A DNA stretch of 64,000 bases from assembly GCA_002269645.1 (NCBI GenBank), contig NIVC01001670.1, positions 1 through 64,000 of the forward strand, read 5' to 3'. Position 1 is the first letter of the stretch; each line of letters opens with the position of its first letter. The translations under genes and the position numbers were made by a program. This document shows, piece after piece, positions 23,201 through 26,200 of this stretch. The stretch comes from Macrostomum lignano (lineage: Eukaryota). The notes beneath the pieces were generated by a model, which saw nothing but the letters and a program-made list of their open reading frames with translations, did not search any database and was not told the origin of the DNA.

Positions 23201-26200
23201 TCACATTTGAGTCGGGTGCCAGTTCCATTTGAGTCGGGTGCCTGTTCCATGTCCCATTTGAGTCGGTGCCTGTCACATTTGAGTCGGGTGCCTGTCACAT
23301 TTGAGTCGGGTGCCTGTTCCATGTCCCATTTGAGTCGGGTGCCTGTTCACATTTGAGTCGGTGCCTGTCACATTTGAGTCGGGTGCCTGTCCCATTTGAG
23401 TCGGGTGCCTGTCCCATTTGAGTCGGGTGCCTATCACATTTGAGTAGGTTGCCTGTTCCCTATGGGGTTTGCTTGGTGCCTGTCACATTTGAGTCGGGTG
23501 CCTGTCACATTTGAGTCGGGTGCCTGTCCCATTTGAGTTGGGTGCCTGTCCCATTTGAGTCGGGTGCCTGTTCTCTATAGGGTTTGTTTTATTGAGCAGC
23601 TAATAATCAATCCAGTAAGCTGAATTTCCCAGATTAGCCAAGCCCCATATTGCACTGGCTCGCCCACCCGCTGTGCAAATGCTGAGCCTCCAGCTTTTAT
23701 AATCCGCCCGCTGCGCCCGGCCGACTCTCGAACCGGACAGGCCGGGGTTTTGAATTGCCCACCCCCGTATTCCGTCAATATTTGGGCAGCCAGTGCTTGC
23801 GGCAGACGACACGGGAAAAGTATCCCATGATTCTGCTTTCACTCTCCCCCTCTTGGTGGCCAGCAAAAGTGTGGCATTCTTGCCTCGGCAAGGAGCAGAA
23901 ATTGCGCAGCCAGATCCGCTTGTGGGGGGGCGCCGTGACGTCTAGGAAAGTGCAAATGTCAAAGCAGATGCACGCAATGCTGGGAGCCATTAAGCTGTAG
24001 ATTCTGTTTGAAAGGGACGTGTCAACCGCTCCGCGCGCCTCCCATCTGTCTCCGAATTCTGTGGGATCGGGTTGCGACCCCCCCCTCCTCGCCTTGGGGA
24101 ATTCTTCTCACTATGGGACTAGCGGGAGGAAAGGGGCTTCCAGCCTGCTTGAGGCGGTGGGCTAATGAAGCACACCTGCTTCTGCTGGTTTGCCGCCTCT
24201 TCTGTGATAAAGAACGCGGATTCGAAAGCTCGTTAGCTGTGCGGCTTCTTCCGAAGCAGCCTGTGCTGATTAAACAGAATTGGATTGACTGGTGTCTGCT
24301 GGGCGGGTATGTGCTGGGCGGGTATGTGCTGGGCGGTTATGTGCTGGGTGGTTATGTGCTGGGCGGGTATGTGCTGGGTGGGTGTCTGCTGGGCGGTTAT
24401 GTGCTGGGCGGGTATGCGCTGGGTGGGTGTCTGCTGGATGGGTATATGCTGGGTGGGTATGCGCTGGGTGGGTGTCTGCTGGATGGGTATATGCTGGGTG
24501 GGTATGTGCTGGGTGGGTATGTGCTGGGTGGGTTCTGCTGCATAGGTATATGCTGGATGGGTATGTGCTGGATGGGTATGTGCTGGGTGGGTATGTGCTG
24601 GGTGGGTATGTGCTGGGTGGGTGTCTGCTAGGTGGTTGTCTGCTAGGTGGGTTTGTGCCGGGCGGGTGTCTGCTGGGTAGGACTACATACAGTAGACGAC
24701 ATGCTTTCATTAGAGGGTGTTCCCGCTGGAGGGTTTACCTTTGGTGGGTTTCCCTCTGGAGATTCGGCAATACCGCAACATCGGCGCCCGCCCCGCGCGG
24801 CCATCTCGCCGCCTCCTCGCCGCCCGCATTTCAGTTCTTCATCACCGGCCTGTCATTCGCAACATTCGCCGTGGGAGCGGACAAGCCGGAGGCCCGGCTG
24901 CAGCTCTCATTCACCTTGTTCCTCACCTCCGTGGCATTCAAGTTTGTCATTAACCAGTCCCTGCCCAAGATTTCCTACCTGACTTACATGGTGAGTACCG
25001 CAACTGCCACCCACCCCCGCACCCACCAGTTCATGATCTCGGGCCTGTCGTTTGCCACCTTTGCTGTGGAGCCGCACAAATGCGAGTACAGGCTGCGGCT
25101 CAGCTTCACCCTGGTGCTCACCAGCGTCACCTTCAAGTATGTCGTGGCGCAGTCGCTGCCTCGGATCTCCTACCTCACCTACATGGTAAGGCCTGGCCGG
25201 GTGGGGCCGCTGCTGCGCTGCCGCACGGGGCTGCTGGGAGGGGCAGTCCTGATTGCGTGTGTGGGCCACGATGGGGAGGGGAGAGGCGGACAGACGAAGG
25301 ACTGCCAGTGGCTGCTGATGGCCTTCTGAGGGCATTGAACTCTGAGCTGTGGTTTTGCGGGATGGCAGTGCTACTCTCTTGTTTGGCACATCTCTTCTGT
25401 GTTCATGACAGCAAGACAGACACACAGACAGACAGACAGACAGACAGACAGACAGACAGACAGACAGACAGACAGACAGACAGACTGACAGACAGACAGA
25501 CAGACAGACAGACAGACAGACAGACAGACAGACAGACAGACAGACAGACAGACAGACAGACAGACAGACAGACAGACAGACAGACAGACAGACAGACAGA
25601 CAGACAGACAGACAGACAGACAGACAGACAGACAGACAGACAGACAGACAGACAGACAGACAGACAGACAGACAGACAGACAGACAGACAGACAGACAGA
25701 CAGACAGACAGACAGACAGACAGACAGACAGACAGACAGACAGACAGACAGACAGACAGACAGACAGACAGACAGACAGACAGACAGACAGACAGACAGA
25801 CAGACAGACAGACAGACAGACAGACAGACAGACAGACAGACATACAGACAGACAGACAGACAGACAGACAGACAGACAGACAGACAGACATACAGACAGA
25901 CAGACAGACAGACACACAGACAGACAGACAGACAGACAGACAGACAGACAGACACACAGACACACAGACAGACAGACAGACAGACAGACCGACAGACAGA
26001 CAGACAGACAGACAGACAGACAGACAGACAGACAGACCGACAGACAGACAGACAGACAGACAGACAGACAGACAGACAGACAGACAGACAGACAGACAGA
26101 CAGACAGACAGACAGACAGACAGACAGACAGACAGACAGACACTCACTCTCGGATTCTGTCGTCCCTCACTTTTTTTCTTTTTTCTTTATTCTTTCACAA

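Follow-up and report, generated by a model that had tools for sequence, protein, structure and literature searches.

We analysed a window of 64,000 nt from the flatworm Macrostomum lignano (assembly GCA_002269645.1, contig NIVC01001670.1, positions 1 to 64,000 of the forward strand) and find that a gene within it, which encodes a Cys-less pentameric ligand-gated ion channel (pLGIC), carries two adjacent homologous versions of its pore exon, here called 6a and 6b. With a probability of about 78%, we read them as two cassettes of old origin that serve as alternatives and are, most likely, mutually exclusive. Each mRNA would take 6a or 6b between constant exons ending at 22486 and starting at 27990, and two subunits would result, with a common ligand-binding domain and common transmembrane helices M3 and M4, and with a differing stretch that runs from the end of M1 through the M1-M2 linker and M2 to the M2-M3 loop. 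For Macrostomum itself this one-or-other use is what we infer; the annotation evidence comes from a nemertean orthologue.

A tandem pair of pore exons

The original prediction, made from the sequence alone, had proposed two 156-nt, phase 0-0 exons, 39 nt apart and each with its own acceptor and donor; sequence, translation and a boundary check reproduced this arrangement, as well as the flanking junctions that it had named, a donor after 22486 and an acceptor before 27990 (Table 1). Each copy is preceded by a pyrimidine-rich tract and cag and followed by gtgagt (6a) or gtaagg (6b), and both encode the same piece of the protein, from the end of M1 to the M2-M3 loop. In pairwise comparison they agree at 38/52 amino acids (AAs) and 110/156 nt (71%); 22 of the 46 nucleotide differences fall at third codon positions, with 17 codons differing only synonymously and 14 changing the AA. 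Repeat finding independently reported the pair as a direct repeat (D5, 71%, offset 195), and the peptide of one exon retrieved the other copy within the window at E ~1e-20 (tblastn), so that the similarity is far above chance; the regions flanking 6a and 6b are unrelated (47% and 33% identity). All six exons from the first extracellular-domain exon to the constitutive downstream exon, the two copies included, are phase 0-0 and bounded by AG/GT. As expected of mutually exclusive tandem exons, 6a and 6b are thus adjacent, homologous, equal in length and phase, and equipped with splice sites of their own.

Such a pair could also arise if two alleles or homeologous copies had been wrongly put in tandem during assembly, and the M. 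lignano genome is indeed highly repetitive and partly duplicated (PMC5730564). The original prediction had considered an artefact unlikely, and we find it extremely improbable: the copies are only 71% identical, their flanks are unrelated, and the same tandem layout recurs in the M. lignano copies P0001 and P0019 and in other phyla. The spacer between the exons is in frame and stop-free, as had been stated beforehand; this carries no weight, because 86% of shuffles of the C-rich 39-mer are stop-free too. It would nevertheless allow the whole 351-nt block (6a, spacer and 6b) to be read through as a single exon, which is what the M. lignano protein model P0019 does. Yet the spacer opens with a strong donor (gtgagt) and closes with a pyrimidine tract and cag, and its counterpart in P0019, although of the same length, has a shifted internal reading frame (VSTANCHPPPHHQ) and a peptide that is not conserved, as expected for non-coding sequence. 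We therefore regard reading through the block as very unlikely.

Both exons are old and maintained

The original prediction also held that selection keeps both exons, and named their nonsynonymous (dN) and synonymous (dS) divergence as a check. Between 6a and 6b, dN is 0.25 and dS 0.96 (dN/dS ~0.26, NG86), in agreement with that claim. A second M. lignano copy of the gene (P0001, 92% identical overall) retains both 6a and 6b, with one substitution in each.

Trematodes and cestodes have two paralogous genes, A and B. Paralogue A carries the pore-exon sequence FFITGL... (Paragonimus westermani, Fasciola, Schistosoma mattheei P0035, and the cestodes Mesocestoides and Hymenolepis), and paralogue B carries FMISGL... 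(S. mattheei P0011, S. margrebowiei, S. japonicum, P. skrjabini and Hymenolepis P0025). Each genomic locus has one pore exon, b-type only in S. mattheei B and a-type only in P. westermani A, and no relic of a second exon was detected at E < 0.1 in the introns of either. A neighbour-joining tree built from the 52 residues of the exon places 6b with the paralogue-B exons of trematodes and cestodes (98% bootstrap; 43-45/52 identical residues with the neodermatan paralogue-B exon), and 6a with the paralogue-A exons (63% bootstrap), with which it has in common an otherwise unusual Phe at 8' (pore residues are numbered from a conserved Arg, 0'). These groupings place the origin of the pair before the Macrostomorpha split from the lineage leading to Neodermata. 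The simplest reading would be that a two-exon gene was later duplicated, each neodermatan daughter keeping one exon; the extracellular-domain tree leaves the relation of Macrostomum to neodermatan A and B unsettled (36-39% support), and speaks neither for nor against this history. As an observation on the gene models, the Dicrocoelium model P0023 skips the M1-M2 exon (...NVFLIM joined directly to DKYVLMSL...), and the M2 segment was not detected in P0024 (Paragonimus heterotremus) either; such a skip, which goes unnoticed because the exon is in frame, is probably an annotation error.

On this comparative evidence, both exon copies are old, under purifying selection and functional. A different view would be that one copy alone is used and that the other, probably 6b, is an unused duplication relic; transcript support for 6b in Macrostomum was not found in the collection searched, and two M. 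lignano models (P0031 and P0103) skip this exon. However, 6b is intact with good splice sites, its dN has stayed at 0.25 against a dS of ~1, it is conserved in the second M. lignano copy, and it groups with the exon that neodermatan paralogue B uses. A dead exon would not stay intact for so long, and we therefore consider a relic unlikely.

Tandem pore exons in other animals

The orthologue of the nemertean Lineus longissimus, a gene spanning 136 kb, has 11 RefSeq isoforms, each with exactly one pore exon and none with two: the a-type exon in X2 and X6 (XP_064647157 and XP_064647161), the b-type in the remaining nine. Between X1 and X2, and likewise between X5 and X6, 10 residues differ, all of them within the pore exon. 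A contig from a related nemertean (L002), which stood in for the Lineus locus, contains an intact tandem pair with a 75-nt spacer, and in Owenia fusiformis two intact copies lie 206 nt apart, the upstream one being the variant with Arg at 2'. Scanning metagenome contigs with the exon alignment yielded 62 environmental loci, six of which hold intact tandem pairs, 51 to 950 nt apart. The exons of the nemertean, Owenia and environmental pairs are all 156 nt long with AG/GT sites, and their variant copies again alter the same positions as Macrostomum 6b: the nemertean and annelid-like pairs have an A/T contrast at 13', and in one environmental member of the family (L015, 972-1334), with pore exons 51 nt apart, the second copy has Tyr at -1', His at 2' and Tyr at 16'. 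Capitella teleta (L004) has two tandem whole genes (4071-7899 and 10001-12837), the pore exons of which differ mainly at 12'-13' (VA vs IT), and the Ala/Thr contrast at 13' is the one that other species encode as alternative exons. In Mercenaria, Mytilus and Tubulanus, where the paralogues are more distant, their isoforms have identical M2 segments.

A single ancient duplication common to flatworms, nemerteans and Owenia was considered and found unsupported. The order of the exons is reversed, the variant standing upstream in the nemertean and Owenia but downstream in Macrostomum, and the exon tree puts the a and b exons of the nemertean into one weakly supported group; duplication on separate occasions is hence no less likely than a single event. 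We can propose, tentatively and with more doubt than conviction, that spiralian Cys-less pLGICs have in the duplicated M1-M2 exon a general 'pore switch' that evolved more than once, pairs being present in flatworms, nemerteans, annelids and further family members and their variant copies altering -1', 2', 13' and 16' time and again. The ring of Arg at 2' in flatworms could then shift the channel between clearly distinct classes of conductance or charge selectivity, and parasitic flatworms would have turned splice forms into two genes, alternative splicing thus being cleanly resolved by duplication of the gene.

One exon or both

Several observations weigh against mutually exclusive use in Macrostomum. 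The collection searched contained no M. lignano transcript-derived protein for the gene, and a homologue search with a 115-AA query joining exon 5, 6b and exon 7 returned 38 short candidates, with no Macrostomum transcript among them. The M. lignano protein models, which come from an error-prone assembly, conflict on the two exons: in P0001, 6a is joined to 6b; in P0031 and P0103, 6a runs on to the exon after the pair; and P0019 reads straight through. Inclusion of both exons and skipping of both would each retain the reading frame, and the protein made from both would have six transmembrane (TM) segments, still a consistent membrane topology. The exon tree was built on 52 residues only, and the Lineus isoforms are automatic RefSeq models. 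Finally, microintrons shorter than 75 nt are reported from flatworms, M. lignano included, and in the liver fluke O. felineus their lengths peak at ~37 nt (PMC6530080), so that a 39-nt GT..AG spacer could be removed as an intron; for M. lignano, the literature searched gave no intron length peak, only the statement that it has microintrons.

The original prediction had cautioned that both exons could be included, and these microintrons keep that caution in force. In its strongest form, both exons would always be included, with the spacer as an ordinary flatworm microintron, giving a subunit with a duplicated M1-end/M2 unit. The spacer has GT..AG ends and a length divisible by 3, close to the O. 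felineus peak; P0001 joins the two exons; and six TM segments would leave M3 and M4 correctly oriented. P0001, however, is an automatic model that ends inside 6b, the segment is single in every M1-M2 homologue inspected except the M. lignano models P0001 and P0019, and the Lineus isoforms and neodermatan genes have one exon each. That we know of no pLGIC with six TM segments per subunit counts further against constant double inclusion, which we hold to be quite unlikely. We take mutually exclusive use of 6a and 6b as the best reading.

A Cys-less pLGIC gene

By its sequence, the gene, which occupies ~14.2 kb to 33.3 kb on the + strand (Table 1), belongs to the eukaryotic 'Cys-less' Pro-loop receptor clade (ELIC-like pLGICs). 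The exon ahead of the pair is 100% identical to P0001 across 86 AAs, and its donor (gt, directly after 22486) would feed either 6a or 6b. With a 355-AA assembly of the exons as query, Pfam Neur_chan_LBD scored 30.0 bits against a cut-off of 26, and Neur_chan_memb 21.9 bits, under its cut-off of 28.1; many close homologues carry precomputed PF02932 hits. The PDB sequence matches were GABA-A gamma2 and ELIC chains (E ~5e-15). An AlphaFold model (33 homologues, pLDDT 82.5) has the extracellular beta-sandwich and four TM helices of the pLGIC superfamily, with strands to residue 183 and helices M1 at 185-208, M2 at 214-238, M3 at 244-272 and M4 at 316-356, and its Foldseek matches were GlyR, GABA-A, GLIC and ELIC (probability 1.0). 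On this model the alternative segment comprises residues 197-248; it starts halfway along M1, takes in the linker, the whole of M2 and the M2-M3 loop, and ends with the first turn of M3.

The diagnostic motifs agree with the clade. The Pro-loop F/YPxD is present as DFPLDVQ, and alignment to GABA-A gamma2 bears out the label 'Cys-less' given by the original prediction, the two Cys-loop cysteines around this motif being replaced by Glu and Leu. In both exons the M2 sequence RL(Q/R)LSFTL(F/V)L puts Arg at 0' and Leu at 9', and an acidic residue, Glu, stands at -2' (PEAR in 6a, CEYR in 6b). The top database matches are Macrostomum lignano proteins, and the M. lignano UniProt models P0019, P0031, P0037 and P0103 match the translation of the window, intronic read-through included, which agrees with the flatworm-type genome that the original prediction had assumed. 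Close homologues (59-77% identity) come from trematodes, cestodes, annelids and a nemertean, with 59-76% identity to the S. mattheei, S. margrebowiei and S. japonicum members.

Table 1. Exons of the Cys-less pLGIC gene and associated elements (positions in the window)
Feature	Position	Strand	Description	Sites or basis
N-terminal extension exon	16594-17127	+	includes RIRAEK	
First extracellular-domain exon	18651-18779	+		boundary check
Extracellular-domain exon	20882-21082	+	ends in Cys-less Pro-loop	boundary check, alignment
Constitutive upstream exon	22229-22486	+	end of extracellular domain, pre-M1, first half of M1	
Minisatellite	24297-24678	+	G-rich, 15-nt unit TGCTGGGTGGGTATG, ~25 copies; intron just upstream of 6a	TRF
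Exon 6a	24835-24990	+	156 nt, phase 0-0, stop-free	cag/TTCTTC ... TACATG/gtgagt
Spacer 6a/6b	24991-25029	+	39 nt, in frame, stop-free, C-rich	GT..AG
Exon 6b	25030-25185	+	156 nt, phase 0-0, stop-free	cag/TTCATG ... TACATG/gtaagg
Constitutive downstream exon	27990-28310	+	M3, short intracellular loop, M4	
Post-M4 exon	30898-30945	+		
C-terminal exon	31982-32059	+	not in paralogue model P0178	
Last coding exon	33129-33275	+	TGA stop	

Two further features of the protein are recorded here. An N-terminal extension of ~190 AAs, unusual for a pLGIC, precedes the ligand-binding domain (exon 16594-17127 together with upstream 14208-15074); it is hydrophilic, has no obvious signal peptide, and contains a motif, LDPTxRLI(D/E)A(L/I)E(T/S)LR...ER..IR.EK, that is conserved from flatworms to annelids. 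At the other end, the exon missing from the paralogue model P0178 may represent a second alternative splicing event, in the post-M4 tail.

Pore residues

The channel-facing positions of pLGIC pores include 2', 13' and 16', along with -2', 6', 9', 17' and 20'; -1' belongs to the M1-M2 linker, at the pore's cytoplasmic mouth. Translation with Arg as 0' returned the residue differences between 6a and 6b that had been predicted, namely A/Y at -1', P/C at -3', Q/R at 2', F/V at 8', A/T at 13' and F/Y at 16'. Exon 6a encodes the pore cassette that is canonical for the family (-2' E, -1' A, 2' Q, 9' L, 13' A, 16' F), and its 2' Gln, 9' Leu, 13' Ala and 16' Phe are those of the whole-family consensus and also of ELIC. 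Exon 6b encodes a variant cassette (-2' E, -1' Y, 2' R, 9' L, 13' T, 16' Y), and the two have in common Glu at -2', Thr at 6' and Leu at 9'. Glu at -2' was taken as a sign of cation selectivity by Johnson et al. (PMC9874803).

The exon alignment and tree have Arg at 2' conserved in all flatworm b-type exons, which argues that this residue matters. Channels built from the two subunits, as homomers or as mixed pentamers, would differ in conductance, selectivity or gating. From the residues, we infer an electrophysiological difference between 6a and 6b, to which the 2' Arg may contribute by altering charge selectivity or conductance, as the original prediction had proposed.

How exclusion could be enforced

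The 39-nt spacer houses the 5' splice site of 6a together with the polypyrimidine tract, the 3' splice site and any local branch point of 6b. U1 bound at the 6a donor would thus likely compete with U2 and U2AF at the 6b branch point and pyrimidine tract, and steric hindrance across the spacer is plausible on this account, though weakened by the microintrons of flatworms. For the same reason, since M. lignano is among the flatworms that have microintrons, we rejected steric hindrance as a sufficient explanation. In Owenia the copies are 206 nt apart, and control other than steric hindrance is therefore needed there. Two other means of enforcement were rejected from the sequence: nonsense-mediated decay, as 156 nt is in frame, and U2/U12 incompatibility, as each of the two introns is of the U2-type, with GT-AG ends.

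The spacer may also pair with the G-rich minisatellite upstream and so assist exclusion. The minisatellite is complementary to the C-rich spacer (inverted repeats I9-I11), and the predicted RNA fold of 24560-25040 pairs the two and loops out 6a (z = -2.46). This pairing may act as a splicing control or looping element; it could also simply reflect base composition. The minisatellite repeat contains, in addition, G-quadruplex-like GGGTGGG runs.

Other repeats and a neighbouring gene

Three different introns of the gene each contain a long (AGAC)n microsatellite, with copy numbers from 105 to 224 (15663-16081, 18906-19800 and 25414-26142). A 52-nt tandem array of 41.5 copies (28337-30496, 97% identity) starts 27 nt past the M3-M4 exon and fills most of the intron that follows, and 16-, 21- and 22-nt arrays are found in other introns (17161-17596, 21128-22198, 22524-23571, 26983-27777, 31012-31593 and 32113-32850). 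Downstream, an apparently intronless open reading frame of ~311 AAs (35887-36822, + strand; Pfam Galactosyl_T, E = 1.4e-41) marks a beta-1,3-galactosyltransferase-like neighbour gene.

Significance and comparison with known systems

Two conserved, natural pore variants on one ligand-binding domain amount to a ready-made experiment on permeation and gating in an uncharacterised receptor class. Humans lack Cys-less pLGICs, which have been put forward as targets for anthelmintics (PMC9874803). That Macrostomum has one gene with two exons, as against two genes with one exon each in trematodes and cestodes, matters for annotation, as automatic gene models wrongly join, skip or read through the exon pair; it also shows clearly how alternative splicing and the duplication of genes can be exchanged for each other.

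The Cys-less Pro-loop receptor clade was described by Jaiteh et al., 2016 (PMC4795631), and schistosome Cys-less ligand-gated ion channels by Johnson et al., 2023 (PMC9874803); planarian gabrg1/gabrg2 are cited in the latter. The Macrostomum gene resembles these receptors in lacking the Cys-loop cysteines and in its FPxD motif, its Glu at -2' and its identity to the Schistosoma members. A duplicated pore exon is described in neither paper: the words 'exon' and 'splic' are absent from Jaiteh et al., and Johnson et al. retained only the longest open reading frame per gene. In the literature searched we found no paper reporting pore-exon switching for Cys-less pLGICs, and to that extent the claim of novelty in the original prediction stands; it does not extend to the receptor class, which had been described, or to exon switching in the second transmembrane segment (TM2), which is known from the alpha6 subunit of nicotinic acetylcholine receptors (nAChRs) in insects, and the exon alternatives were already implicit in the automatic RefSeq annotation of Lineus.

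ELIC (Erwinia ligand-gated ion channel) offers a further comparison. The M2 and M2-M3 loop of 6a are close to ELIC (RLQTSFTLMLTVVAYAF), with identical residues at 2' (Q), 9' (L), 13' (A) and 16' (F), and in closed ELIC the hydrophobic constrictions are formed by 9' Leu and 16' Phe. In contrast, 6b departs from ELIC at 2', 13' and 16', and the Macrostomum gene is eukaryotic and interrupted by introns, its product having a long N-terminal extension and a tail after M4, at low overall identity. As a splicing arrangement, the pair recalls exons 2 and 3 of alpha-tropomyosin, which are mutually exclusive by steric hindrance: in both, the first exon's donor lies near the branch point and pyrimidine tract of the exon that follows, and the sites would be too close for joint use. 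Flatworm spliceosomes, however, appear to remove microintrons, and the vertebrate size limit may not apply to them.

The closest parallel is the insect nAChR alpha6, in which exons 8a, 8b and 8c are mutually exclusive (PMC1919356, PMC6393475), their splicing changes TM2 residues (PMC2064938), and exons have been lost in some lineages (PMC1919356). Both systems consist of tandem duplicated exons in a pLGIC gene that swap TM2 residues under a constant ligand-binding domain, and both have been conserved over hundreds of millions of years with loss of exons in some lineages. They differ in that alpha6 is a Cys-loop cationic nAChR of a subfamily very distant from the Cys-less, ELIC-like clade considered here, that alpha6 splicing has RT-PCR (reverse transcription PCR) proof and the Macrostomum pair is known from genome sequence, and that the Cys-less pair appears to have been resolved into two separate genes in parasitic flatworms. 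The Macrostomum exons are not homologous to the alpha6 exon-8 system, their gene falling in the Cys-less clade with GABA-A gamma2 and ELIC as its best PDB relatives, and with subfamilies so distant the duplications are therefore independent. By analogy, then, the Macrostomum pair would work like the insect alpha6 system in an unrelated branch of the superfamily, and is no new kind of mechanism.

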